Counted from the first letter of the stretch, positions 2,529 through 32,949 are shown. The stretch is DNA of 64,000 bases from Phaeosaccion multiseriatum (GCA_965112735.1 OZ218951.1:2232001-2296000), one strand, 5' to 3'. A program made the numbers and translations. Notes: generated by a model from the sequence alone, not told the origin.

Positions 2529-4131
2529 ATGCAAAGGACCCTCAGCACTGACAGTAACTCGCTCGGTCCATGCGTGCCCCCCTCCTGCTCTCGCGCTGTT
2601 GCTTATTCCCCTCGTGGCAGACCACCCGCCTGAAGGAAGCCATCACCAATGGCCAGAGCGTCAAAAAGGTGAAAGGGCCGGTGAGAGCCCTCGTCACTAC
2701 AAACGGAGGGAGGAAGGCGTGCTTGGACGAGCCCCTCGATGAGAGAGGGTGGCTTGCCCTACCCGCAGCTATACATGAAGGGGGGGGGGGGGGGTAAGAG
2801 GGAGCGTCGGTGAATGCTGCAAATCGTGTGTGCGGGTTGACTGCGTTAATGGGTACATGTACGGTAAAGGATGCTGCTGCTATTGTACCACAGCTTCTCT
2901 ATGCTGGTGCGGATGTCAATGCAGTAACGATGGAGGGAAGCACGGCTCTCATGACGGCCTCCTCGGAGGGGGCCGTTGTGGTGTTGCCCAAGCTGCTCTC
3001 CGCCGGTGCCAGCTTGGACTGGGTTGACAGTGAAGGTTCCACGGCGTTGACCCTTTCGGCACAGGACGGCCATCATGCAGTGGTGCAGCAGCTGCTAACT
3101 GCAGGTGCAGAGGTGGACCGTGTAGGTATGAGAGGGAAGACGGCGCTCCGTTATGCCTGTCTTGGAGGACATAAAAGGGTGGTCCAGCAGCTGCTCAAGG
3201 ACGGTGCGTAAGACATTCCGTAGGCTTTACGCCGTTGGTATTGGTCTCCCATGGAGGACATCTTGCGGTGGTGCAGCAGCTGCTGTCGGCCGGCGCTGAT
3301 CCCAACCACTTTGATGACAGAAATGTTTGGGGCCGCACCCCCTTGACGATGGCCACACGAAACGGACACCACAGGGTCACGCAGCTGCTCCTCATCTCCG
3401 TGGCAGAGGCGAATTTAGGAGGCCGCAGCCAATGGGATGCGCTCTATCTTATCTTGCAAGCCAACATGGACATGGCATTGTGGTGGATCAGCTCCTCGCA
3501 GCCGGCGCGAAACTCGAACGCCGCAATGGTGAGGAGGGGAGAAGTGCGTTGATGGGAGCGTCTATGGAAGGGCACAGAAGTATTGTGCGAAAGCTGCTCA
3601 GGGCGGGTGCAGAGTTGAATGCCGTGGGTGGCGACGGGTGGGGGGCGATACCAGTTGGCATCTCATGGAGGTCATGCTCGTGTTGTGGAGGAGCTCATCT
3701 CAGCAGGCGCCGATGTGGAAATGCTGACTAGGGTGGGGGGTACGCCTTTGTTGCTGGCTGCTGCGTTTGGTCATGGGGCAGTGATTCATGAGCTCCTGTC
3801 TGCAGGGGCTGATCCTGACAATGAGGGCAGTGTCAGCAGCGGAACGGCCTTGTTTTGTGCAGCATTGAATGGCCACAGCGGGGCGGCGCTGGAGCTGCTC
3901 TCAGGAGGGGCCTCACTGACAAAGGCTCTGACCAAAGCGCGAGAGGATCGCGATGAAGCCCGTATTGTAGAATTCCTCCTGACCGCCGACAGGCAGCACT
4001 TTGCGTCACAAAGCGCGCTGGACCTGATGCGGGACTTTGACCCTGTCTTTGGCAAGGAAGGGGGGCTGAAGGTGTCCCAGAGAGAGATTGGCCCTGACGT
4101 GCTGCAGGAGGTGGCGGAGGAGATGGCATGA
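2529..4131 (+). pseudogene. Ankyrin-repeat paralog of the upstream gene, disrupted by frameshifts and stops
   Basis: ANK repeats are spread over several frames (ORFs 2570-2797, 2810-3211, 3235-3552, 3327-3731, 3619-4131), with in-frame TAA codons at ~2795 and 3209. It shares N-terminal LDEPLDE.G and C-terminal F.SQ.ALDLMR..D..FGKE.G...[MV]AEEM motifs with the 699-2215 gene. Confidence 0.7.
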
Positions 4132-4514
4132 TGAAAGCGGCACCTCTCGCCTGCGGTTTGGCCAGGGCGTTGAGAAGGAAGGGGACGAAAATGGCCCTCG
4201 TCAGACTTGCAGAGGCAGTGTTGATGGGGTGGAGCAGAGGTCAGCGTGAGAGGCTGTGGGGTAGGTAGGAGGATGAAGGAGAGAGAGACGTCCAAGGAGG
4301 TTGGTGTGAGTGTAGGTGGTAATAACGTAAGAACAAGCTGCTTCACCACCCCTCCTCCTATCTTCTTTTCCCCTTCCCCCTTCCATCCCCAGCCCCTACG
4401 CACCCCTCACCCACTCACATAAACACGCACGCTTTCCAGCACTCACTCACCCACTCCTCACTCACTCACTCACGCGGGACACACGGACGCACGCACTCGC
4501 ACGCTCGCATGCAC

Positions 4515-7500
4515 GCACTCACTCATTCACTTCCTCACTCCCTCCTCCGTCTCTCCCTCTTCCCTCCCTCTCTCCCTTCCTCCTTCCTCCCTCCCTCCCT
4601 TCCTTCCCTCCCTCCCGCCCTCCCTCCCTCCCTCCATCACTCACTCACTCACTCATTCACTCACTCACTCACTCACTCACTCACTCAATCACTCACTCAC
4701 TCACTCACACACTCACTCACTCACTCACTCACTCACTCACTCACTCACTCACTCACTCACTCATTCATTCACTCATTCACTCACTCACTCCCCTCTCTCC
4801 CTCCCTCCCCCCCCCCCTCCATCCCTCCCTCCCTCCCTCCCTCCCTCCCTCCCTCCCTCCCTCCCTCCCTCCCTCCCTCCCTCCCTCACCTACTCACCCA
4901 CTCCCCTCCCTCCCTTCCTCCCACCCTCCCTCCGTCACGCTTTTACTCCCTCAATCCCTCACTTCCTGGCAGACCTCCCTCACTCCCTCAGTCCCTCGCC
5001 CACCCAATCACTCCCGCACGCACGCACTCATTCTCACTCACGCACGCACGCACGCACCCAAGCCCTCACTCACTCCCCACCCTCACTACTCACCCCTCCC
5101 TCACTCACGCAGCACTCCATCCTTCCCTCACCCACCCCCTCACTCCCTCAGTCATCCCCCTCACTCCCTCACTCCGGCTCCATCCCCACTATAGGCCCAG
5201 AGGTGTCACTCACTCATTCACTCCCTCACTCCCTCCTCCGTCTCTCCCTCCCTCCCTCCCTCCCTCCCTCCATCCATCCCTCCCTCCCTCCCTCCCTCCC
5301 TCCCTCCCTCCCTCCCTCCCTCCCTCCCTCCCTCCCTCCCTCCCTCCCTCCCTCCCTCCCTCCCTCCCTCCCTCCCTCCCTCCCTCCCTCCCTCCCTCCC
5401 TCCCTCCCTCCCTCCCTCCCTCCCTCCCTCCCTCCCTCCCTCCCTCCCTCCCTCCCTCCCTCCCTCCCTCCCTCCCTCCCTCCCTCCCTCCCTCCCTCCC
5501 TCCCTCCCTCCCTCCCTCCCTCCCTCCCTCCCTCCCTCCCTCCCTCCCTCCCTCCCTCCCTCCCTCCCTCCCTCCCTCCCTCCCTCCCTCCCTCCCTCCC
5601 TCCCTCCCTCCCTCCCTCCCTCCCTCCCTCCCTCCCTCCCTCCCTCCCTCCCTCCCTCCCTCCCTCCCTCCCTCCCTCCCTCCCTCCCTCCCTCCCTCCC
5701 TCCCTCCCTCCCTCCCTCCCTCCCTCCCTCCCTCCCTCCCTCCCTCCCTCCCTCCCTCCCTCCCTCCCTCCCTCCCTCCCTCCCTCCCTCCCTCCCTCCC
5801 TCCCTCCCTCCCTCCCTCCCTCCCTCCCTCCCTCCCTCCCTCCCTCCCTCCCTCCCTCCCTCCCTCCCTCCCTCCCTCCCTCCCTCCCTCCCTCCCTCCC
5901 TCCCTCCCTCCCTCCCTCCCTCCCTCCCTCCCTCCCTCCCTCCCTCCCTCCCTCCCTCCCTCCCTCCCTCCCTCCCTCCCTCCCTCCCTCCCTCCCTCCC
6001 TCCCTCCCTCCCTCCCTCCCTCCCTCCCTCCCTCCCTCCCTCCCTCCCTCCCTCCCTCCCTCCCTCCCTCCCTCCCTCCCTCCCTCCCTCCCTCCCTCCC
6101 TCCCTCCCTCCCTCCCTCCCTCCCTCCCTCCCTCCCTCCCTCCCTCCCTCCCTCCCTCCCTCCCTCCCTCCCTCCCTCCCTCCCTCCCTCCCTCCCTCCC
6201 TCCCTCCCTCCCTCCCTCCCTCCCTCCCTCCCTCCCTCCCTCCCTCCCTCCCTCCCTCCCTCCCTCCCTCCCTCCCTCCCTCCCTCCCTCCCTCCCTCCC
6301 TCCCTCCCTCCCTCCCTCCCTCCCTCCCTCCCTCCCTCCCTCCCTCCCTCCCTCCCTCCCTCCCTCCCTCCCTCCCTCCCTCCCTCCCTCCCTCCCTCCC
6401 TCCCTCCCTCCCTCCCTCCCTCCCTCCCTCCCTCCCTCCCTCCCTCCCTCCCTCCCTCCCTCCCTCCCTCCCTCCCTCCCTCCCTCCCTCCCTCCCTCCC
6501 TCCCTCCCTCCCTCCCTCCCTCCCTCCCTCCCTCCCTCCCTCCCTCCCTCCCTCCCTCCCTCCCTCCCTCCCTCCCTCCCTCCCTCCCTCCCTCCCTCCC
6601 TCCCTCCCTCCCTCCCTCCCTCCCTCCCTCCCTCCCTCCCTCCCTCCCTCCCTCCCTCCCTCCCTCCCTCCCTCCCTCCCTCCCTCCCTCCCTCCCTCCC
6701 TCCCTCCCTCCCTCCCTCCCTCCCTCCCTCCCTCCCTCCCTCCCTCCCTCCCTCCCTCCCTCCCTCCCTCCCTCCCTCCCTCCCTCCCTCCCTCCCTCCC
6801 TCCCTCCCTCCCTCCCTCCCTCCCTCCCTCCCTCCCTCCCTCCCTCCCTCCCTCCCTCCCTCCCTCCCTCCCTCCCTCCCTCCCTCCCTCCCTCCCTCCC
6901 TCCCTCCCTCCCTCCCTCCCTCCCTCCCTCCCTCCCTCCCTCCCTCCCTCCCTCCCTCCCTCCCTCCCTCCCTCCCTCCCTCCCTCCCTCCCTCCCTCCC
7001 TCCCTCCCTCCCTCCCTCCCTCCCTCCCTCCCTCCCTCCCTCCCTCCCTCCCTCCCTCCCTCCCTCCCGCCCTCCCTCCCTCCCTCCCTCCCTCCCTCCC
7101 TCCCTCCCTCCCTCCCTCCCTCCCTCCCTCCCTCCCTCCCTCCCTCCCTCCCTCCCTCCGAGGGAGGGAGGGTTCGGAAAGAGAGATGGAAGCACTGGCA
7201 AGCGTAGACGGAAGGAGAGCCGGGAGACGGGAAAAAGGCTTGGTGAAAAACCGAGTAAATTACTTACGGAGGAAAGATCTCCTGCTGTGAAAAGACTATC
7301 GCACGTGAAGAGTCCGACACGTGCGCACTATGACCACGTGGAGCCTATGGGCAGACAGAGCTCAGTAGCTTTATACCCATCGCACCCCTATCATACGGAA
7401 TGCTCTGAGTAGATTACACTTTTTTTTTCTCACACACACACACTATGATACCTACCTCCCTCCCTCCCTCCCTCCCTCCCTCCCTCCCTCCCTCCCTCCC

Positions 7501-7720
7501 TCCCTCCCTCCCTCCCTCCATCCCCCCCTCCCCGCCTTCATCCCTTCCTCTCCCCCCCCCTCACTCACTCACCCACTCCCCTCCCTCCCTCCCTCCCACC
7601 CTCCCTCCGTCACGCTTTTACTTCCTCACTCCCTCACTTCCTGGCAGACCCCCCTCACTCCCTCAGTCCCTCGCCTACCCAATCACTCCCGCACGCACTC
7701 ACTCTCACTCACGCACGCAC
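4515..7720. repeat. Tandem duplication of a low-complexity (CCCT/CACT) segment
   Basis: Unique anchors recur: CACTCCCTCCTCCGTCTCTCCCTC at ~4535 and ~5227, and CCGTCACGCTTTTAC...CTTCCTGGCAGACC...CCCAATCACTCCCGCACGCAC at ~4930-5025 and ~7605-7700. Confidence 0.75.
5240..7159. repeat. Nearly perfect (CCCT)n tetranucleotide tract, ~1.9 kb
   Basis: Directly visible. It generates the spurious PPSL and GREG ORFs. Confidence 0.97.
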
Positions 7721-8109
7721 GCCCGCAAAAGGTAAGGAAAGGCTAAGGAAGGTACTGCGTCATTTGCTCGCTACACATGCTAAGATCCCCCTCCTCCCCC
7801 TCACATCATGTTCTCTTCAACTCGCGGTCCGTACCGGCCTGACCCTCCGCCTCCTTCCCCCCAAATCTCTGCAGCTCATCACTTCCGCCTCTTTTGCAAG
7901 GCAGCGCAGCAGTGTATTTGGCATTACCCCGGATGCGTGGCAACCGTGTGGAGCAGCGGCAGTGCGCGTACCATCGTGATTTGACGAAGCCGTACATTGA
8001 TGGTGTGAGCGAGACACCAACTGGATTGCCAGACGACTTGCTTGCTTCGCCCGCTTTCACATCCGATGGTGCTCACCACAGTGGGCCACGAGCGCACTAC
8101 AGGAGAGGC

Positions 8110-19150: not shown

Positions 19151-21418
19151 TCAACTGAAGCCCCACCAGCGCTCCGTTCCCTCCATGCAAGAAATGCCGA
19201 TTTTGTCCTTGAACGTCGTGAGGAAAGACACGAGGTCGGGCTCCCCCTCCAACGCCAACGGCACCGCAAAGGGCCCTACTTGCTTCACTAACTCCCCCTC
19301 CTTCGTCCACGGACCTGCTGTCTGCCCCAGCACTCGGCCGATCTCTCGCACAAGAGCCTCTCTTGCCTTATCTCGCTTCATAGCCTCAATCGCCCCTTGC
19401 TGCCTCTCCTTCTCTGCGGCCTCTGCCTCTCTCTTGGCGAGGGCGGCTGCGGCAGCGGCGGCGGCGGCTTCCTCGGGGGTAGGGGGCACGACGCGTCCCT
19501 TCCTTCCTCCTCCTCCTCTCCCTCCATCTCCGCCTTGTCCTCTCCCCACCATGCCCCCCCCTCCTGCTTCAGCAGCGTTACCACCGCTATTGGTAGCCCT
19601 CTCTTCACCGCCACCTGCCCCTGCTGTAGAGCCGCCCAACGTCGGGAAGGCCGCTTCGTTCGCATCGTACGTCCAGGACACAATCTTCCCTCCACGTCGT
19701 GTCATCCTCACGCCTGCCACGGCACAGGCACCATTATACACACACACACCAACGAGGAGCGCAGCAGGGCGACAATTACAAGGTGTTACAAACCACACGA
19801 CACACGACACACGACACATGACACCACAGAACCCCCCTTTCCGACGATTTCACCGCCCCCCACTCACCCTCCGTCCTCCCTTCCTCTCATCTCCCGTCCC
19901 TCACTTATCCACCCACCACCCACTACTATACTGCCATGCTCCCACGAACCACCCCGGTAAGTCATCATCCACACGTCGTTTCGCCCCTCTCCTCCATCCT
20001 CACCGGCACTCTCTTGCAGCAGCTGGCGATCCGCGTCGCTGGCAGGGAAGGAAACGCCTGTCTTTGCCTTGACGAGGCTCTGCAGCTTCGTCTCAGGCAC
20101 TGCCCCACCCAAGTGCATCAGCACATCCACGCCAATCTCAGCGCAATCTTCCAACTGCGCCTTCGTCCGTGGCACATCACTTCCTCCTCCTCCTCCTCCT
20201 CCTCGAGTCTGAAGCCCCGCGGCGGCTTTGGTTCCTCCTCCTCTTGTCTTGGGTGGAGGCGCTGCTGCCGAAGATGCCACCGCTGCTTTCTTCTTCAGGG
20301 CAGCCCTACTAAGCTTGGGCTCGGGCAACGCACACACCCCCACTCCTACCCCCACCGACACCCCTCCTCCTCCTCCACCACCACCACCCCCCCCGCCCCC
20401 TCCTCCTCCTCCTCCTCCTCCTCCTACGCCACCACCACCACCCCCACCAGCTCCTCCATCCGCTGCACCGATGCGGTACTTCTTCTTCTTGGGCATCTTG
20501 ATGCACCCCCCAACGTGATTCACCGCGAACATCCCCACACTCTGACGACTCCCAAATAACATCTCGAGGGTCTCTGGGCTGGGATCAAAGCCCACCACCG
20601 CCTCCACCTTACTCTGCAGCGCCTTCTCCTCCGCCCACTTCTTTGCCCCCTTGCCGCCACCGCCAATCATATCCGCCGCTCCCATCTCCCACAGCGCCTC
20701 CTCAATCGCTCGTTTGAGATTGTCTCGGTGCAAATCTGCGTCATTCGGGTCGAGCACATGATACACCACCCCCCGGCCCGCCTGTGCAGCAGACTGCTTC
20801 CCTTGCGAACTGCACATGATGCCGGGAATGCTCTTGATGAACTTGTGCACGTTCTTGTGTGCTGCATTGCTAATGATCGAAACTGTCGCGTTGGTCAAAG
20901 GTAGCCCCACCCAATCGCGAAACTCCGGCGCCAATTCCTTCTCCGTCTGTCCTCCCCTCGCCGTAATGGCCCCCACAATCACTCCCCGGGCCCTGTTCTC
21001 CGCCTCCTGAGCACTACTCTCCAGCGCCCATAGCCCGCCGGAGAAGGCCTTGACATCCGGTAAGCTCTGCAGAAATTGCTTGGAGAGCACCGCATCCCAG
21101 TTGGTCGTGCCCCCTCCCCCTCCACCACCACCCGCCGAGGCCTCTTGCCCTTGCAGCGCTTTCTTCATGTCCTGCAAAGTCATGAAGCCTCCGCTGTCCT
21201 GCAGAATCATGAGCACTTGTCGAGCCTTCTCATTGTTGCCCCTTCCTCCTCCTCCTCCTCCTCCTCCTCCTCCTCCTCCTCCTCCTCCTCCTCCTCCTCG
21301 TGCTGCTGTCTTCCCACTGGACATGCTCCCAGCAAGGGCGTCCATCTCCGCAACTCCTCCATTGTGTCCCTCATACCCGCCGTTGCTGTAGCCGTTCCTA
21401 CCACAGCCAAGACCATTC

Positions 21419-21457
<39 letters not shown>

Positions 21458-22860
21458 TGCCCATATGACTGCTGCTGCAGTCCATATGACTGCTGCTGCT
21501 GCCCATATGGCTGCTGCTGCTGCTCGTGTTGCTGCTGCTGGCGAGAGTCGCCCCCCCCTCTTCCACCCCTCACGTCCCTGGCGTCTTGCCGTCCCCCAAA
21601 TGGAACCGCTCCACCGCCTCCGCCACCCTGCTGCTGCCCATATTGCTGCTGCTGCTGCTGCTGCTGCTGCCGCCTACCCTTTGGTTGCTGTTGCTGCTGA
21701 TACTGATTTTCGCCACCACCTCCCCTGCCGCCTCTAATATTGGACTGCTGTCGCCCATGCTGCTGCCCTTGCTGCTGCTGCTGTCCATATGACTGCTGTT
21801 GCCCGTGACCTCTTCCTCCGCCACCGAAGCATTCGCTTTCGCTTTCGTTGTCGAACCTCCCTCGCCCCGCGCGCCCGCCTTCCTGCCCATATGACTGCTG
21901 CTGGCCAAAGCCAAACGCCCCCCTTCCTCCTCCCTGAGACTGGTACCCTCCCTGCTGCCCTCCATGTTGCCCTCCCTGTTGCTGCTGCTGCTGGCCATAC
22001 GAGCTCTGAGGCGGCGCTTGCTGTCGGACGTTTCGGAAATCCCCCCCGTTCGCTGCCACCCCCCCCCAGTCTCCTCCTCCTCCTCCTCCTCCTCCTCCTC
22101 CTCCTCCTCCTCCTCCTCCTCCTCCTCCTCCTCCTCCTCGTCCTCCTCCTTCTCCTCCCTGCACCTTTTGACCCCTCGGCCAAATCTTCCTCGGGGCGGG
22201 CGGCTTGTAGGCAATGCTCTCCTCCTCCCCTTCCTCCCCACCGCCATTAACTCTACCCTCCTCCTCTTTCCGTAACGCCTCCAGCTCCTCGTCCCGCAGC
22301 CTCGCCGTCTCTTGATCGAGCTCGGCGTCCGTAAAGCCAAAGAGCTTCTGCAGCATCTTCACCAGCGAGGCCTGTGGCTCCATGGTCTCTTCCAACCTAA
22401 CGCACTCCCTATCGAAGCGCTTGGCGCCCTCCATCTTCTCTCCACTGAGGCTGTGTGGCAGCAGCGCGGTGCGCACGGTAATCCCGAAGGTCATGAGCGC
22501 CAACGCGAGCCAGTTCTCACCAGGGGGAAGCACGGTGATGCCCTCGGCCTTGGCGCCTCCTTTCTCAAGATCAAGCATGTTTCCGGCGACGGCGTACAAA
22601 ATCTCGGACTGGTGTGATTGAAGATATATATATATATATATATCGCGCAAAAGAGGGAGGGGGCGGGAGAAGCACACGGAACATTGGGCAGAGAATGGAT
22701 GGCATACAAAGCATATTGAGGCACAAGAAGGGGGGGGGGGGGGCACGAAAGAGAGAGAGAGGGTACATAAAATACACGTTCAAAAACCAAACCGAACGCT
22801 TCAGCTCGCTGCCAAGTACCTCGGGGACAGGCAAACAAACAAAGAACCGAAGTCATGATG

Positions 22861-22899
<39 letters not shown>

Positions 22900-22994
22900 A
22901 CAGGCAGGCAGACAGGCAGACAGACAGGCAGACAGGCAGACAAGACAGGCAGACAGACAGACAGACAGGCAGACAGACAGACAGACAGACAGGG

Positions 22995-23045
<51 letters not shown>

Positions 23046-24319
23046 GAGGCGCAGGTCTCGAAGAGTACTGTCCGACGCAAGCGAATTTAATTATCTTCCC
23101 CCTCCGCTCTTCCCACTTTCACATTGAAAAAACCCCTCCCCTCCTTTTACACATTGAAGAAAAAAAAACTCTCTCCTCTTTTTCCATTGATAAAAGCACC
23201 TCCTCTCCTTTTATCACATCGAAAAAAAGCCCCTCTCCTCCTCTTTCACACTACGTACAGCTCCTCCCCTCCCCTCCCCTCCCCTCCCCTCCTCTTCCAC
23301 GCATCGTACCTTGTTCTGATGAATGGCGGCGGCCGCCAGAGAGTTCCTGGGCATGTACACAGTCCCACCACGCTCCGATATAGGCGAGCAGGCCCACTGC
23401 GGCACGGGCACACTCAGCTTGATGTTTAAGGTGCCCTTGCCGCGGTCCAGGCGGTCTGAGGGAGGGAGAGGAGGGGGGAGGGAGGGAGGGAGGGAGGGAG
23501 GGAGGGAGGGAGGGAGGGAGGGAGGGAGGGAGGGAGGGAGGGAGGGAGGGAGGAGCTTAGGTATTACGGGTGTGCTCCAAAGTAAGTACAAAGGAAGAAG
23601 GAAGGAGTTAAGAGAGAAATAAGAAGGAGAAGAAGGGGAGCAGACAAAAGACACTCACGCAAAAACAAACCCAAAAACACACACACACACACACGCCGAC
23701 ACGCACACGCACACGCACACACAGCATCCATCCCTTCATTCCTTCCTTCGCTCCCTCACCTGCCCACAGATGGAACATCCTGTCCCTGTTCCCCGAGGCC
23801 ATCTGCCCCACGATTCGAGCTCCGAGGGGAATGTCATCCACCAGCGGAGTGCCCCTCCACAGAGGACCATCTGAGCCCTTCACCCCACCACCCCCACGGA
23901 GTCCTTTCTTCCCTCCTCCTCCGCTGCCCTGGGGGTTGAGTATGGCCCCTTCGGGAAGGGCGTCCGCAGGGAAGACGAGCTGCTGCTTGTTGTCGCCCTT
24001 CTGCACGTGAATCTCATTAGCATGCACACCCAACAGGTGCCCGAGTTGGTTCTGGTTGGCAGGGATGCCCGACAGCACGGCGTTCATGTCGGATGGGTTG
24101 ACAATCACACCAATGGCAGAGCTCAGCACGTCCAGCAGCACCTACAGGGTAAGTAAGGGTAAGTAAGACAGGGCAGTTTTCAGTTGTCAGTTGTCAGTTT
24201 ATGTCACCTTATCAATATCGAACACCATAAATGGAATCGATATTAGGGGGGGACACGGTGAGGAGGAGCAGACTGTGGTTTGATGGATCGAGCGAGCCGT
24301 CTATAATCATATACACACC

Positions 24320-24367
<48 letters not shown>

Positions 24368-27300
24368 GAGGAGTGGTAGCGGGACGCACGTGAACTCCCC
24401 AAAACACCCCCAGCTCACCTTCATGGACTCCCTCTTACGCTTGGTGGAGCTCGTCACCAGCTCCACTATCACCTCTGGCGGCGGTCGAGGCGCCATACTG
24501 CTGCTGCCCCTCCTGTTGCTCCCGCTCACCTCCGCCTCCGCACCACCACCACCAGCCGCCGGCGCCGCCGCTGTTGCTGCCTTGGCAAGCTCATTCTTCT
24601 TCTGCTGCACCACAATGGGTCCAAAGATCTCCAGCAGCACGTCCTCAGCAGCAGGGAAGGAGCTCTGGCGTATCCACACGCGGATCTTCTCCGTGTCTGA
24701 CACGAGCCGGTAGATGAGCCACGCCACACACACCGAGTCCGCAACGGCTTCACGCAGACCCTAGTGGAGCAGTGGCGTGGGGGTTATTTGGGAGGGGGGA
24801 GGGGTTGGAGGGCGGGGGGGGGTGAGTGGGTGAGCGCGTGAGTGAGTGAATAGGTGAGTGGGTGAGTGAGTGCAAAGGGCGGGGAAGGTAGGGGCAGGGA
24901 CGGGAGGTGAAGCACTTCGTGTACCCCCCCCACCCCCCCCACCCCCCCATCCTCCATCCTCACTCTCCCCTTCCACTCTACTTCCCACACTCCCTCCTCA
25001 CTCTCCCCTCCCACTCACTCTACTTCCCTCACTGCCCTTCCCTCACTCCCTCCTCACTCTCCCCTCCCACTCACTCTACTTCCCTCACTGCCCTTCCCCT
25101 CACTCCCTCCTCACTCTCCCCTCCCAATCTACTTCCCATACTCCCTCCTCACTCTCCCCTCCCACTCACTCTACTTCCCCCACTGCCCTTCCCCTCACAC
25201 CTCACTCTGCCCTCACTGACGCATTGAACCAAAACTCACTGTCCTATGAACCAAAAACTCAAACTCTTACTACGAAGCATGACTTAATTGTATGAATCAA
25301 AAACTCTAGTGACTTGAGAACTAAAAACTCACCCCTGCTAGCTGCTCCTCCCCCACACGGCACATCCCTCGGGCGGTGCAGTTGCTCCGAAGACCACTGT
25401 CGAAGGAGAAGGGCACAGAGGGGGGGAACACACTCTCCATGTACGCGGCAGGCACCATGTCGCGGGTGAGGCTCGTTAAGGTTACTTTGAGGCCGCCCCC
25501 CTGAGACACACCACCGGCCTGAGGGGAGACAGGCAGGGAGGGAAGGAGGGAGCGAGGGAGGGGGCGAAGGGGTGAGGGGGTGAGTGGAAGTAGAGTGGAT
25601 TCTTTCCTCCAAATCAAAAGGTGGTCCGCGTCTCTCTACATCTCGCCCTCCCCGACAGACAGTAGCCCAGACACTCCCCACACTCTCCCTATATATACCC
25701 CCGATCTCCTACCCTCCACCGCATACCCCATGTTTATGATATATACCCAGTACCTCATACCGCATACCCCATGTTTATGATATATACCCAGTACCTCATA
25801 CCGCATACCCCATGTTTATGATATATATACCCAGTACCTCATACCGCATACCCCATGTTTATGATATATACCCAGTACCTCATACCGCATACCCCATGTT
25901 TATGATATATATACCCAGTACCTCATACCGCATACCCCATGTTTATGATATATACCCAGTACCTCAAACCGCATACCCCATGTTTATGATATATACCCAG
26001 TACCTCATACCGCATACCCCATGTTCATGATATATACCCAGTACCTCATACCGCATACCCCATGTTCATGATATATACCCAGTACCTCAAACCGCATACC
26101 CCATGTTTATGATATATACCCAGTGCCTCATACCGCATACCCGATGTTCATGATATATACCCAGTACCTCATACCGCATACCCCATGTTCATGATATATA
26201 CCCAGTACCTCAAACCGCATACCCCATGTTTATGATATATACCCAGTACCTCATACCGCATACCATGTTCATGATATATACCCAGTACCTTGTCCTTGAG
26301 CTTCTGCTTGCCCGTGGGGCGGCAGAGCATGAGCTGATCTTTAAAGGTCCACACGAGGAGGAGGCGCATCAAGTTGAGCTTGGCAGGGGGCATTCGGGAT
26401 GGGTCGTGGAGGATACGCGGTGTCGGGACCCCAAGCAAGCCTGCCACTCGTTGGGCCAGGTGTCGGGAGGTGCTGCTCAGCTGATAGGGGACCATATACA
26501 GAAAACAGAGCGACGGGGGGGGGGGGGGGAGGTTGGTGAGGGTGTGAGGGTGGACAGAGAGAGAGAGAGAGAGAGAGAGAAGCAGGGGTTGAAGTGTTAG
26601 AGTGGAGTATGGGAGGTAACAGGCCTGCACTTTTCACAACCACCACCCCAACCAACCAACCAACCATTGCTAAAGAAGGAGGCATACCGGCCCCCTCCTC
26701 CTTCCATCCCACCCTCCCCTTCTTCCCTCCCACCCTCCCCTCCTTCCCACCCTCCCCTCCTTCCCACCCTCCCCTCCTTCCCTCCCACCCTCTCCTCCCT
26801 CCCACCCTCCCCTCCTTCCCTCCCACCCTCCCCTTCTTCCCTCCCACCCTCTCCTCCCTCCCACCCTCCCCTTCTTCCCTCCCACCCTCTCCTCCTTCCC
26901 ACCCTCCCCTCCTTCCCTCCCACCCTCCCCTCCTTCCCTCCCACCCTCCCCTCCTTCCCTCCCACCCTCTCCTCGCTCCAACCCTCCCCTCCTTTCCCCC
27001 CCTTCCCTCACCTGGCGCATGCGTGAGTGTGCGAGGGCGTGTGCCTTCATGAAGCTATCCCTGTGCTTTTCCGCCAGGTTATTATAGGCAAAGAGCAGCC
27101 GCATCAGCATGATGGGCTCGGAGTACACCCCTCCGTCGAACTTGGCCTGCCCCACCATGGTCTTGGCCACAATACCATTGTACTCATCAGGATCGTCGTG
27201 AATCAACGGAGAAGTCACTCGAAAGGGCGTACGTGGCAAGGACAACGCCGCTGCCATGACAATGGCCTCTGCAATGACGCCCATCTGTGCTCCCAAGCCA

Positions 27301-29629
27301 ATCATCCTCCCCAGCAGCAAGTCCACCCCGAGCGAGGCGACAAAGGTTCCCATCACCGTCATGTCTCCGTCGTCGTCGGCTTGACTAATAAAGCCCGACT
27401 CATGCAGGGAAGCAAAGGCCCGTCCCATGTGCTCCATCTCCGGCGGCTCGATGACGTCAAGCAACACAGGTACCACCTTGGTGTCAAGCATGCTCTTGAG
27501 CCCTAGAATCACTGCATCCAATGGTTGCCGGTGCATCTCCCCTTCCTCAAACTCCGGCATGTGGGTGTCAAACAGCTCCCTCGAGTACAGCCGATACGCC
27601 GACCCTGGTCGTGTTCTTCCGGTCCTGCCTGCCCGCTGCGTTGCCGAAGCACGCGAAACCCATGTGGCCGCGAGCTGAGCCCGGTGGGTCAAAGGGTTGT
27701 ACTGCAGCTGCTTCTCCGTCCCCAGGCACACCACATGGTCCACGTCGGGGAGCGTTACTGAGGATTCCGCGGCGTTGGTTGCGATGATAATCTTAACCTC
27801 ATCCTGATCAGGGCGGGAGGGAGGGAGGGAGGGAGAGAGGCAGGGAGAGACGAGGCATGCTTAGGCTACGGCCGTGGGGTCGGATGGGATGGGAGATGAT
27901 GGGGGACATCAACGTGGTAAGTCCACACACACACGCAAACACACTCACTCACTCACACACTCACACACTCACACAAACATACACACACACACGCACACAC
28001 GCACCCACCCATGGACATGACGTACCGGTGCTCCAGGCTTGAATGCCTCCATCTGCTCCTCGAAGGGAATGTCTCCATGAATGGCAAGGCACTTGTACGT
28101 CACTCTTGTAGAGCGCACCTCCTCAAACTTGGAGGTTATCTCCACGATGTCACCCATTCCAGACACAAAGATGAGCACCGCCGAGCCGGGCTTGCCCACC
28201 GTCCTCGCCACCTGCACAGCAAGGGTGTATTGGAGGGCGTTGCTGCGGGTGGAGGGGGGCCCACCTCCTCCAGTCATTTGTGCAAGCTTGTCGGCGTCGT
28301 CGCCAACCCGATGGGGCAGCTGCAGCGCACTGCGAAGGTCCTCCGCAAAGTATGTGTCAATGGGAAAGCGACGCACCCCAACAAAGAGGGGCGGCTCCGG
28401 CACACCAAAGTACTGCTGATACATGGCCGCTGCAATGGTTGCGGACATCAAAATGAGCTTGATGCGGGGGTTGGTGGCCAGTAGCCTCCGTGCCATGAGG
28501 CACAAGATGTCCGTGTCCACACTCCGCTCGTGTACCTCGTCGATGATAAGGTGCGTGTGCTTGTCAAATGTCTCGGGGTGGTGTGCCATGAGTCGCACCA
28601 AATACCCCGTGGTCACGAACCAAATGCGCGTCTGTGGCGACTCCTCACGCATGCCGTGCCCCATGCGGTACCCCACCAGCTTGTCGTAGCCCGGCATGCT
28701 CTTGACACGGTCCATGAGGGCCCGTACGGCGATGCGTCTCGGCTGACTCACAAACATGCGCGTGTTGGGTACAGCGTCATAGATGATGAGCGGTACTCGG
28801 CTGCTCTTGCCGCACCCCGTCTCTCCGTGGATGATGGTCACCCGATGCTTGTCAACGTGCTCCAGAATGCGATCCCTGTGCTGATCAATGGGGAGAAGCG
28901 TCGTGTCCGCTGCTCTGTCCCACATTTCCTCATCCTCCACCTCCTCCTCCTCCACCTCCGCCTCCTCCGGCTCCTCTCCGTCGTTCCACGCCTCATTCTT
29001 CTGCTTGAGAAGAGCGGCGGTGGTGGAGTCCTTAGCCTTTGTTGCCTTTGTTGCCGACTTGGTAGTGGGCGAGGTGCTCGCATTCCGCCCCACCCGAGGG
29101 CTCGCTTGCTTCTTCCCAATCTCGTCCTGGGCCAGAAGGTCCTCGTACCACACCTCCTGATCGCTGTCGCCCGCCTCCACCTCCGCCTCTGCTTCCTCCC
29201 CCCCGTCCACCTCTCCTCCTCCCTCGCCGCCGCTGCTCAGCAGGAGGTCTATCTTCTTCGCCCCATCCCCCTTCCCTTTCCCTTCCCCCGTAGCAGCAGC
29301 AGCAGCAGCAGCCCCCGCCGCTAGCTTATGGAAGGTAGCACCATCGTACCAGTCCTTCGGCGAACCCTCTAGCAGGGGAACGACACTCTCCGAGCCTTCC
29401 TCACCGCCCTCCTGGCTCCGTCTCGCCTTGCCCCACAGCTTCGATAGCGTCCTCTGATAAGCGTAGGACACGCACACACCCGTCCAGGTGGGCAGGGGCA
29501 GCGACGCATCCTCCTCGAGGCGGGCCCCCCTGGCCATGGCGAGTAGCGCCTGCTCCTGTCCGTCCGTCAGCTCATTGCCGGCCAGCTTCATGCAGCGCAC
29601 AGCAGCAAGGCCGGGAAGGCCCTCGTCCT

Positions 29630-29661
<32 letters not shown>

Positions 29662-32600
29662 CGGGTAGACAGGTAGACAGGTAGACAGGTAGACAGGTAG
29701 GTAGACAGGCGGGTAGGTGGGCAGGCAGGAGGAGGGAAGGATGAGGACCAAACAGGAGAGGCGTAAGTGAATGGTATATACGAAGATGAGACGCGAAACA
29801 AACATTGATCGTGGCGTGCGTGCGTGCGTACGTATATGTGTGAGTGGGTGTGTGCGAGCATGAATGTGCACGAGGCAAGTCTGCCCCGTCTCTCCAATCG
29901 AGCTGGAGCTCACACTAACTAACCTGAGGTAGCACCGCCAAATCGGCACTGTTCTTGTTCAGAAAGTGCACCTCGGGGGCTCCGGAGCCCTTTTCGGACT
30001 CCTCGTCCAGAGGAAAGTCTGTGAGGAAGAGGAAGGGCGGGGGGTTGCGAGAGATGGGGTAGGTATAGAGCAGGGTGCTAAGAAGGGGCGAGCTCCCAGC
30101 TCTACACCTCTCTGCCCTCTAAAGAGGCCTCTCACGAAAGGAAAGGAAATCGTGCGTGCGGGAAGAGACGGAGAGGGCGTGGAGGGGGGGGGACTGAAGA
30201 GCGGATTGGCATCTCCGACCCCCCACCCTTTCAGGCAGACACACGGCAAGCCCCAGACAGAGACAGAGAGGCGATGATGGAAGCGTGTGTGTGCAGCTAA
30301 CAGCTAGCAGCTAGCAAAGTGGATCAGAAGAGGAGTAGAAATGATTAGCGGTTGGCACGGTGGTGTGTCTCCTTACCTTCCAGTGACTCCAGCCCATAGA
30401 GAGCCCGGCAGAACAGCAGAGCCATTGCCGTTTCGTCTGCCTCGCTCGCCCTGATTTTGGTGTTGGTTGATGGGAAAAGATTTCAAGCAAGCACGGAGAC
30501 AACAAGTAGAGGGTGAGCGAGCGTACGGAGCGGGAGTACAGATGATGGAGGAAGCTTCACCCCCATAGTCCCTCCTTCCCTCCTTCCAATCCCACCCTAG
30601 ACAGTCATCACAGACATCTCTCTTTGACGAACAAGGAGATTTCATTTGTCCCCGCCCCTCGTCCACTCCTCACTCACGAAGTATTGGCCACAAGCTGAAA
30701 GTCGGGCTCCTGTCCCCTGACCCACTCCAGCGTCTCCTTCGGCTTGCGCTCTCCGCGAATGAACTTGCTCAGCAGCATCAGCTTCTTTCCTCCTCCTCCT
30801 CCTCCTCCTCCTCCTCCTCCTCCTCCTCCTCCTCCTCCTCCTCCTCCTCCTCCTCCTCCTCCTCCTCCTTCACCTCCTCCTCCTCCTTCTCCTCCCTCCT
30901 GCGCGCCCCCCTGGCCTCCCTCGCCCCCATCCTCCCCGCTCTTATCCTCCATATCCTCCTGCTCCACAGCAAAGGCGCTAGTGGGCAGGTGACTCGTGTA
31001 GTCCGTGCCTATTAGAATGGCCCATTCGACCAACGCCGACTCGGAAAGCCCTACCGCCTTGGCCAGCGTCGTCCTATCCCACACGCGTGCCGAGGGTGCC
31101 TGCCCCTCCGTCAGCTCGAGCTCGTCGAAACGGATGTAACGACATTTGGCAAACATGTGGAAGTCGGAGTCATTGCCCAGCACGAAGGACCGCCCCTCGG
31201 GGTCTGAGGCACTCTCTTTGGCGATATCTGTGGCAAGCAAGGAGGGAGGGAGGGAGGGGGAGGGGGAGGGAGTGAGTGAGTGAGTGAGGGAGGAAGGGGG
31301 GGGGGAGGGGGGGAGGGAGAGAGGGAGAGAGGGAGGGAGAGAGAGAGGGAAGGAGGGAGGGAAGGAAGGAAGGAAGGAAGGAAGGAAGGAAGGAAGGAAG
31401 GAAGGAGGGAGGGAGGGAGGGAGGGAGGGAATGAGGGAGGGAAGGAGGGAGGGAGGGAGGGAGAGAGAGAGGGAGAGAGAGGGGAAGGAAGGAGGGAGGG
31501 CCGGGACGAAAGTGATCGCCACACAAACGTGTGAGAGATTGGGAGAGCAGGTGCGGTTCCGGGGGGGTGCGTGTAGGACAACAGAGTCGTGTTGATCCTC
31601 CTGCTCGCGGCTCCAACACCCGCATGACAGTGAGCCGAGGTGCCAGCATTGTGCTACTACCAGCACCCTGCTCCTGCTGTCCTCCTCTTCCTTCTCTCAT
31701 CCTGCCTCTCCTTCCCCCCCTCCCTCACCCCCACCCCGAAAGGAAGGTCTGCTGAAGTCCCTTGACTTACTTACCCTGGTCAGCCTCTCCTTCGCACTGC
31801 ACGCACTCCACGCCGAGCTGCTCCATCGTCACTCTCATCTGGGTGGTGGTAAGTGCCGGTGCCGGAAACCGAAGCCCCTCCGGGGGTCTGGCCCCATCTA
31901 GGCACCACCCGTGCAGTGCATCCCACTGCTCCCTCTGGCGCTCCTTCCTGGCCTTTTGGCACGCGGTCTTGAGCTGTCGATCACTCCCGTCCCAGTACGT
32001 GATGGGTTCGATGCCGGCTGTGACAGGGATGTTTGTTGTGTTGGTTTTGTTTTGTGTGAGAAGAAATGGTGTGTGTACGAGAGTCCCCCTCACAAGAAGA
32101 AAGAATCCAATCCAAATACAGCGAGGCCGAGCCGTGGTCGGACGCAGATGGAAAATTCAGAGGAATCGGCGGGGTGTTGAGGGCGGTGTGTGTTGATGCG
32201 GGAGGAACATACAGCAGAGGGGGACATCAGACCATTTCACTCTCCCCACTTCGGTCTGATCTGTCCGCCAGTCCGTCGGTACGCGTGAGTGCCTCACCTT
32301 CTCGCAGGAGTCTGATGGTTCTCGTTGCCATGGCATGCACTCTCTCAAAGTCTCCACCGAGATCGCTTCGCACCTCACCACCGCCACTGCCCCCGCCGCC
32401 ACCTGCTTTCGATGGAGCTCCCTCCTCTGCTGCTTGCTCTGGCTCCGGTGCTGGCGCCACAATGACATTGTCCCTTTCCATACAGGCGTGGGCCCACCCC
32501 GACCCATCTATGAGCAGTCGGTCTCCCTTCCTAAGGTCTGTTGTGTGTATCGAGAGGGAGCGGGTGACCAAATGCCGGCCACGGAGAGTGAGAAAAAAAT

Positions 32601-32949
32601 AAAGACGGAGATGTCATCCTTCTTAGCTCCGCCCCAGCCCCGCCCCCCCACGCCTCCTTCTCACAAAGGCACCCGCAGCAAATAGCGGAATCTTCTTCAC
32701 TACCTCCCCCCCTCTCCTCCTCCTCCCCCTCTCCTCCCCCCTTTCCTTCCTCAGTTCTTGGATACTGGGAATGGATAGTACTCTCTCTACCCTCTGTTCC
32801 ACTGCTCTTCCCTAGCAACTGTTGTAACCTCCGACAAGTACTTCGCTCCTCTCTGCCTTCCTCTCCGCTTTTCTTCCTCACTCACCTTCCCATCGGACGG
32901 TGCCGCCCAGCTGGGAGCTTATATAGCTTCGCAGACGCTTAACCCCCAT
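19151..32949 (-). CDS. Giant multidomain protein (~2709 aa, 15 exons): Asteroid/FEN-like PIN nuclease + DEVH-box DEAH/RHA RNA helicase + HA2 + G/Q-rich IDR + tandem LOTUS/OST-HTH-like domains
   Basis: Exons 32949-32886, 32537-32298, 32017-31775, 31227-30678, 30450-30377, 30018-29924, 29627-28026, 27803-27012, 26480-26289, 25518-25333, 24760-24419, 24141-23760, 23455-23310, 22608-19950, 19713-19151. All are GT..AG and phase-compatible, totalling 8130 nt (2710 codons). PIN motifs: MGVKRL, LLIDG, YWDG, EGEAD, NDSDF, IGTDY. Helicase motifs: GETGCGKS, SQPRRIA, DEVH, SAT, ATNAAESSVT, QRAGRTGR. Confidence 0.85.
25718..26288. repeat. ~41-bp minisatellite (~14 copies) at the 5' end of an intron of the helicase gene
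   Basis: The unit CCGCATACCCCATGTTTATGATATATACCCAGTACCTCATA is tandemly repeated with minor variants. Confidence 0.92.

Follow-up and report, generated by a model that had tools for sequence, protein, structure and literature searches.

The Rad2-XPG proteins FEN1, EXO1, XPG, GEN1 and Asteroid make up the FEN-like group of the PIN-like superfamily (PMC5499597). Here we describe a locus in a 64,000-nt stretch of Phaeosaccion multiseriatum DNA (GCA_965112735.1 OZ218951.1:2232001-2296000; called the window, in whose positions all coordinates are given) that is predicted to encode a nuclease of this kind and a DEAH/RHA helicase on one chain, followed by a tail of its own. Like FEN1, EXO1, XPG, GEN1 and Asteroid, the predicted nuclease has an MGxxGL start, XPG_N and XPG_I regions, seven carboxylates and the arch Lys/Arg; unlike them, it is joined to a helicase protein of 1,600-2,400 aa. 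The helicase part shares with DHX9, Spindle-E/TDRD9, DHX29, DHX36 and DHX15/Prp43 the motifs I, II (DEVH), III and VI, the RecA1 and RecA2 domains and an HA2-like region. In contrast to members of that class, it has its own C-terminal region and no recognised OB_NTP_bind; the Tudor domain of Spindle-E/TDRD9, the R3H, ankyrin and YTH domains of YTHDC2, and dsRBD domains were not found by Pfam in the window protein. Its match to Spindle-E among PDB sequences was no better than those to DHX9 and DHX15.

Several described systems combine some of these parts. MARF1 carries a NYN nuclease, an RRM and LOTUS repeats, and the window protein would resemble it in having a PIN-fold nuclease and tandem LOTUS-type modules on one chain, if its tail is of LOTUS type. 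It differs from MARF1 in that its nuclease is FEN-type and not NYN (no exon piece matched NYN or RRM), in that it also carries a helicase and a SYGQ/RGG region, and in that the LOTUS identity is putative. The SYGQ-rich repeats interspersed with RGG boxes recall the FET proteins FUS, EWS and TAF15; this likeness is compositional and not one of homology, and phase separation is putative. In YTHDC2-XRN1, a DExH helicase is paired with a 5' nuclease of the FEN superfamily. The partnership of Tejas with Spindle-E brings a LOTUS protein to a DExH helicase (PMC10412688). A helicase and a 5' nuclease or LOTUS partner would here share one chain, whereas YTHDC2-XRN1 and Spindle-E-Tejas/TDRD5 are non-covalent complexes of animal germ cells, and the likeness is one of shared domain classes. 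DNA2, WRN, Dicer, Cas3 and PhoH2 couple unwinding with cutting on a single polypeptide, but these have other nuclease folds and/or helicase superfamilies, and none joins a FEN-type nuclease to a DEAH/RHA helicase. A survey of the PIN superfamily, in which bacterial PhoH2 is described as PIN plus PhoH, lists no architecture of FEN-like nuclease and DEAH helicase (PMC5499597).

The sequence-only reading of this DNA had proposed that 15 GT..AG exons splice into one frame of 2709 aa. We enumerated the frame-keeping GT..AG chains and then used homology to select among them, and the rebuilt chain was exactly the same: 15 exons, 8130 nt and 2709 aa with zero internal stops, running on the minus strand from an ATG at 32949-32947 to a TGA at 19153-19151. 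The GT and AG were present at the three junctions that had been singled out for checking (30678/30450, 29924/29627 and 23310/22608). GC content is about 0.55-0.68 over the 64-kb window, which is eukaryotic in style. A profile of 31 long homologues was collinear with the minus-strand open frames of the window. Compared with the spliced protein, this profile gave a single alignment of 1483 bits, in which profile positions 1-1545 correspond to aa 1-1906. The profile ranges of exons 1-14 are consecutive from exon to exon and gap-free over every junction. Because each exon occupies the next consecutive block of the profile, we read the exons as one gene, and the collinear match of the spliced exons to the profile is far beyond chance. 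The best 150 homologues, compared with the window by tblastn, gave ordered matches at 32070-31776 and 31228-30950, at 28900-27009 in the helicase, and then at 26483-26316, 23847-23740 and 22600-22330. The prediction of a single minus-strand gene for one polypeptide is confirmed by this collinearity and by the fused relatives described below. Callers based on open reading frames split the gene into unrelated pieces, as the sequence-only reading had said.

By its profile matches, the N-terminal domain is a Rad2/XPG/FEN-type nuclease. It reads MGVKRL..LLIDGSG..TYWDG..LK......R..CEGEADQ..GNDSDFHMF..LIGTDYT, with the predicted catalytic residues D32 (LLIDG), D111 (YWDG), E178/D180 (EGEAD), D202/D204 (DSDF) and D258 (GTDYT). 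A profile (A3) built from the N-termini of 26 relatives and the exons of the window matched human FEN1 with an E value of 9.6e-20, aligning profile positions 1-232 with FEN1 1-239, the whole nuclease core. Further matches were to EXO1 (9e-13), Rad2/XPG (4e-12 to 1e-8) and GEN1 (9e-8). When 29 members of A3 were searched against Pfam, XPG_I was found in 15/29, XPG_N in 12/29 and XPG_I_2, the Asteroid family, in 11/29. Exon 4 of the window by itself matched XPG_I with E 0.004 and 17.9 bits, below the cut-off of 24.9. An Asteroid/FAM120-type PIN domain had been suggested earlier. The domain is a PIN-like nuclease whose acidic site is complete, but the Asteroid subtype was not established, as XPG_I and XPG_I_2 score alike and both lie near or under their cut-offs; the sole member with a listed XPG_I_2 score (P0024) reached 23.2 bits against a cut-off of 24.2, and XPG_I scores elsewhere are similar.

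The linker between nuclease and helicase contains the family motif FCRALYGLESLEDFPLDEE, which is well conserved in the family and lies in two of the smallest exons (5 and 6). The middle of the protein is, by motifs and Pfam matches, a DEAH/RHA helicase of DEVH type with intact motifs, in agreement with the DEVH RNA helicase called before: GETGCGKS at aa 690, DEVH at aa 785, SAT at aa 817 and QRAGRTGR at aa 1012. Pfam DEAD scored 39 bits (cut-off 26) and Helicase_C 34.3 bits (cut-off 23.5). Exon 7 matched DHX9 (4.6e-31) and Spindle-E (5.5e-31) in the PDB, and exon 8 matched DHX15, Prp43 and Spindle-E at about 5e-28. The best solved relatives (DHX9, Spindle-E, Prp2, DHX29, MLE, Prp43/DHX15 and DHX36) all fall at E values of about 1e-25 to 1e-31. 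Since it is roughly equidistant from all of them, the helicase appears to be the orthologue of none of the solved members. The place of the HA2/OB-fold domains is occupied by a conserved, family-specific C-terminal region which ends in the block AEGITVLPPGENWLALALMTFG and in which Pfam recognised no domain (21751..26480).

The union of nuclease and helicase is not confined to this alga. A HMMER search of the whole library with the first helicase exon returned 352 proteins at E <=1e-30, many of which have lengths of 1,500-2,100 aa and a helicase that sets in around residue 500-650. Among the best 150, which are representatives of 50%-identity clusters, the nuclease domain was found in 79/150, and in 44/59 of the clusters of at least 1200 aa. 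Most of the long relatives that lack the nuclease have their helicase start in the first ~100 residues, a pattern that truncated N-termini could explain. From these comparisons, the fusion of nuclease and helicase is the norm of a widespread, uncharacterised eukaryotic family. Its members include proteins of Aureococcus anophagefferens (KAH8071535.1), Epithemia clementina (KAL7579290.1), Fistulifera solaris (GAX22797.1), Nitzschia inconspicua, Paraphysomonas (MMETSP0104), Hondaea fermentalgiana (GBG30002.1, auto-named DHX29, with CS+TPR at its end) and the chytrid Spizellomyces punctatus (XP_016604277.1), every one of them labelled 'hypothetical' or auto-named. Relatives occur on single transcripts: one from MMETSP codes for 1936 aa, and Logan contigs of ~6.4 kb code for 2085 aa. 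Because such full-length relatives exist, the fusion seems to be transcribed as one message elsewhere.

The sequence-only reading had not recognised the architecture as a described family. No description of a FEN-like nuclease with a DEAH helicase was found in the literature (open-access text only) and members are annotated as hypothetical, but the core of nuclease and helicase is no one-off, given the 79 clusters. A search for an already characterised orthogroup thus led to a widespread family, none of which is characterised, since its members are hypothetical or auto-named and the literature gave no description. A word-index architecture search with residues 1-330 of P0024 returned five proteins, none with OST-HTH. 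One relative of 1241 aa (P0003) is a single intronless open reading frame in an AT-rich genome (L001 1634-5392; GCA_024449855.1, JAANSV010061252.1). It spans profile positions 479-1518 only, with no nuclease in the 1.6 kb upstream to the contig end and no tail downstream.

After AEGITVLPPGENWLALALMTFG, in the same open frame as the preceding conserved block and modules R1-R4, comes a low-complexity region of ~260 aa. The intrinsically disordered region that had been claimed is present here, being rich in Gly (30%) and Gln (29%). Beyond it lie five modules (R1-R5) of ~73-90 aa with Gly/Ala runs between them. The modules have a loose KAR..GG..E.xLQ start in common, and in several of them a helix of the KFIKSIPGI, QFLQSLPDV or LVSFLTTF type is followed by a short hydrophobic strand; the first two motifs resemble the LOTUS helix-3 signature. 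We compared the tail with the ESM Atlas by protein-language-model features. OST-HTH was the top family for the whole 462-aa tail (0.78), for R2 (0.89, with 179/256 shared features, a recognition value of 2478 and 34/100 matches) and for R5 (0.84, with 137 shared features and 40/100 matches), and it was the commonest family in all three queries (22, 34 and 40 of 100). By the calibration of the Atlas, true members of a family typically show values like those of R2, and scores <0.9 are a lead only. These neighbours suggest that the five modules are possibly winged helices of the LOTUS/OST-HTH kind. The SYGQ/RGG region and the module tail are known only in this copy and appear to be lineage-specific.

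DEAH/RHA helicases move 3'-to-5', and the FEN family are 5' nucleases. The two properties suggest an 'unwind and clip' mechanism. The helicase would load on a 3' single-stranded region and pull that strand 3'-to-5' through its core. Because it moves in this direction, the complementary strand would be peeled off from its 5' end, and the resulting 5' flap or free 5' end may be threaded and cut by the FEN-type nuclease. The protein would in this way open a duplex, be it double-stranded RNA, an RNA:DNA hybrid or a structured nucleic acid, and cut the strand that it displaces. We infer that the two steps are coupled because both activities share one chain and have matching polarity; the argument is drawn from the established properties of the two enzyme families. 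The RGG/SYGQ region and the winged-helix modules might add nucleic-acid binding, perhaps recruitment to a condensate. We give a probability of roughly 0.7 to this reading as a whole, namely one gene for a member of a Rad2/XPG/FEN-type nuclease plus DEVH helicase family, with its own SYGQ/RGG and module tail, that unwinds and clips.

Several observations weigh against it. The 15-exon structure at this locus is predicted from the DNA and its homologues, and the frame across the low-complexity region is unprovable from open reading frames alone. In the helicase, HA2_C reached 17.6 bits, under the Pfam cut-off of 21.3, and the OB fold expected of DEAH/RHA proteins (OB_NTP_bind) was not recognised by Pfam in the window protein and four relatives. 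The remaining points concern the tail. No Pfam family, OST-HTH (PF12872) included, matched any of the five modules at E values up to 10, no match to the modules was found in NCBIfam or PHROG, and R2 and R5 gave none among PDB sequences. AlphaFold2 (AF2) models were unusable, with a predicted local distance difference test (pLDDT) score of 37 from the single sequence and, from a 5-row repeat alignment, a score of 51 with three helices and no strands; Foldseek with the AF2 model of the modules gave nothing meaningful. The modules were not significantly alike in pairwise shuffles or by hhalign, and the tail was without a homologue in two protein searches and in JGI metagenome contigs. OST-HTH was found in 0/20 tails of relatives, some of which carry C2H2 fingers, and the homologue P0088, scanned in full, carries CS+TPR.

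The alternative that fares best accepts the single gene and its domains but places its substrate in DNA, such as flaps of replication or repair, R-loops or G-quadruplex DNA, and not in RNA silencing or granules. The nearest solved relatives of the nuclease (FEN1, EXO1, XPG/Rad2 and GEN1) are DNA enzymes, DHX9 and DHX36 unwind DNA and R-loops too, and some relatives have C2H2 zinc fingers in their tails. On the other hand, the FEN superfamily contains the RNA enzymes XRN1/2 and the RNA-associated Mkt1, and DEAH/RHA helicases are mostly RNA-acting. The RGG/SYGQ region and the LOTUS-like tail also point to RNA, if the LOTUS call is real. With the nuclease leaning to DNA and the helicase class and tail leaning to RNA, we hold a DNA substrate to be a serious possibility at somewhat less than even odds. 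The role in RNA silencing or granules that had been proposed for the protein is speculation and one possibility among several; the domains would suit a part in DNA repair or at R-loops just as well.

It is also quite possible, though in our judgment less likely than not, that the tail modules are another type of winged helix or a novel small fold and that their LOTUS appearance is pattern-matching. The blank searches in Pfam, NCBIfam, PHROG and the PDB, the poor AF2 models and the empty Foldseek result agree with this. Other winged-helix families (Egalitarian, eIF2D, MCM3 and TTC3) are also among the Atlas neighbours, and every Atlas score falls in the range that the tool itself calls a lead. 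Opposed to it are the first rank and frequency of OST-HTH in all three Atlas queries, the R2 values calibrated as true membership, and the motifs that resemble the LOTUS helix-3 signature. The multi-LOTUS claim of the sequence-only reading is weakly supported, by its language-model neighbours and not by family, structure-database or fold comparisons. A true LOTUS-type winged helix is, we think, probably present in one module or more; that all five are of this type is doubtful.

The predicted nuclease site looks intact and conserved family-wide, and the enzyme looks active. Over 79 relatives, the seven carboxylates were kept in 57/57, 64/64, 69/69, 69/69, 67/68, 68/68 and 76/76 of the sequences covering each column. 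An arch Arg at the position of FEN1 R100 was present in 65/65 relatives covering it, and a Lys at the K93 position is nearly invariant in A3; the window protein has both of these and all seven carboxylates. FEN-like domains have become pseudo-enzymes repeatedly, and a catalytically dead scaffold like Mkt1 or FAM120 might be imagined here, but with invariance broken by a single exception at one column we regard this as very improbable. Hardly credible is the idea that the 15-exon model merges two or three adjacent genes (nuclease, helicase and tail): it could appeal to a gene model derived from the DNA sequence only, to the weak similarity of exons 10-11 to the profile and to an ambiguous last intron, but in relatives the nuclease, the helicase and the C-terminal block belong to a single protein and lie on single transcripts, profile positions continue over every junction, and the tail lies within the same uninterrupted 914-codon, 2.6-kb exon (exon 14) as the last conserved family block.

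Thirteen of the 14 donors are near consensus (GTGAG, GTAAG, GTACG or GTTAG types). The donor of exon 14 at 19950 is poor (GTG|GTTCGT), and an alternative consensus donor (GCC|GTGAGG) lies at 20004, 54 nt upstream, where the frame is kept and the product is 2691 aa. We prefer the version with donor 20004; 18 residues differ and the domains are unchanged. The tail modules have GC contents of ~0.60/0.44/0.71 at the first, second and third codon positions (GC1/GC2/GC3), like the proven exons, while those of the introns are flat. Four sequencing runs contain 0.87-0.92 of the words of 24800-30800. At the other end of the gene, joining exon 1 directly to exon 2 (32537) makes the first catalytic Asp residue 32, its position in relatives too. 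A codon model had placed an in-frame, GT..AG-flanked segment of 108 nt (32704-32811) in the main product, from which we left it out because the family spacing puts that Asp at residue 32. Between exons 1 and 2, it might serve as a cassette exon. The crude dynamic programming with a codon model over-called short exons and served only for the enumeration of junctions. The features of the gene are listed in Table 1.

Table 1. Predicted gene, exons, domains and tail modules, with positions in the window
Feature	Position	Strand	Basis or remark
Whole gene	19151..32949	minus	15 coding exons, all 14 introns GT..AG, collinear with family profile
Exon 1	32949-32886	minus	profile positions 1-24
Exon 2	32537-32298	minus	profile positions 25-79
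Exon 3	32017-31775	minus	profile positions 80-160
Exon 4	31227-30678	minus	profile positions 161-273
Exon 5	30450-30377	minus	profile positions 274-297
Exon 6	30018-29924	minus	profile positions 298-335
Exon 7	29627-28026	minus	profile positions 336-775
Exon 8	27803-27012	minus	profile positions 776-1037
Exon 9	26480-26289	minus	profile positions 1038-1103
Exon 10	25518-25333	minus	profile positions 1104-1154
Exon 11	24760-24419	minus	profile positions 1155-1260
Exon 12	24141-23760	minus	profile positions 1261-1365
Exon 13	23455-23310	minus	profile positions 1366-1423
Exon 14	22608-19950	minus	profile positions 1424-1545, then tail beyond profile
Exon 15	19713-19151	minus	Gly/Ala-rich spacer, module R5, stop codon; outside profile
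Predicted Rad2/XPG/FEN-type 5' nuclease, aa 1-~290 (exons 1-4)	30678..32949	minus	profile match, Pfam, conserved carboxylates
Gly-rich insertion, exon 4 tail	30788..30900	minus	aa ~290-365, 49% Gly, (TCC)n on plus strand
Linker with family motif FCRALYGLESLEDFPLDEE, nuclease-helicase bridge (exons 5-6)	29924..30450	minus	profile 274-335 gap-free; tblastn with P0039, 30446-30348
Acidic/Ala-rich spacer, then predicted RecA1 (exon 7)	28026..29627	minus	Pfam DEAD, motifs, PDB matches
Predicted RecA2 and HA2-like region (exon 8)	27012..27803	minus	Pfam Helicase_C, HA2_C below cut-off, PDB matches
Family-specific C-terminal accessory region (exons 9-13 and start of exon 14)	21751..26480	minus	profile 1038-1545, collinear
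Low-complexity region, aa ~1830-2093 (exon 14)	21238..22029	minus	30% Gly, 29% Gln, QQQSYGQ repeats, RGG/RGGG boxes
Module R1 (exon 14)	21231-21013	minus	possible LOTUS/OST-HTH
Module R2 (exon 14)	21000-20746	minus	possible LOTUS/OST-HTH
Module R3 (exon 14)	20730-20461	minus	possible LOTUS/OST-HTH
Gly/Ala-rich linker between R3 and R4 (exon 14)	20460-20164	minus	
Module R4 (exon 14)	20163-19951	minus	with donor 20004 the last strand comes from exon 15
Module R5 (exon 15)	19372-19154	minus	after Gly/Ala-rich spacer
4-nt microsatellites in introns	31241-31500, 29631-29729, 27924-28008, 23458-23553, 22861-23045		

The introns of the gene are rich in repeats. Most of them contain 4-nt microsatellites, (GGAG)n, (AGGC)n, (CACA)n, (GAGG)n or (CAGA)n, often adjoining splice sites. 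The first part of intron 9 is taken up by 13.9 copies of a 41-bp unit with 95% identity (25718-26290), an array that begins at the donor of exon 9 (26289/26288); because it starts there, donor-like sites may recur every 41 nt. Intron 8 holds a tandem array of 21/38/59-bp units (26693-27002) that is purine-rich on the minus strand and in frame with exon 8. The intron (27011-26481) stays open in frame, and an open frame at 27860-26673 spans exon 8 into it. The codon model and the open-reading-frame callers passed the true donor at 27012 into the G-rich, GGREGGEGG-type repeats of this intron, and their extended exon was rejected. Intron 10 has a CT-rich tandem array (24952-25245). Elsewhere in the window, 4001-8000 shows an extreme strand asymmetry, with GC skew of -0.72 and -0.76, AT skew of -0.35 and -0.46 and GC content of 0.66-0.68, and differs in this asymmetry from the remainder.

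The domain kinds in this protein are themselves known; what the locus presents is a putative lineage-specific tail on a widespread, uncharacterised family of nuclease-helicases. This apparently unstudied family comprises at least 79 sequence clusters from stramenopiles, a chytrid and many environmental eukaryotes, and it hard-wires a strictly conserved active site of flap-endonuclease type to a DEAH/RHA helicase. The matching strand polarities would offer a simple mechanism for removing a displaced strand from an RNA duplex, an RNA:DNA hybrid or a flap. Tentatively, and with the odds against it, one may go further and see here an ancient, conserved eukaryotic FEN plus DExH 'unwind-and-clip' enzyme which has gone unstudied because animals, plants and yeasts lost it, and whose algal copy independently gained true LOTUS repeats along with a FET-like SYGQ/RGG region. 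If so, one chain would hold a DExH helicase, a 5' nuclease, a LOTUS scaffold and a condensate region, which are spread over several proteins in animal germ granules. If the tail is real, modules in the style of germ granules would have been recruited outside animals.

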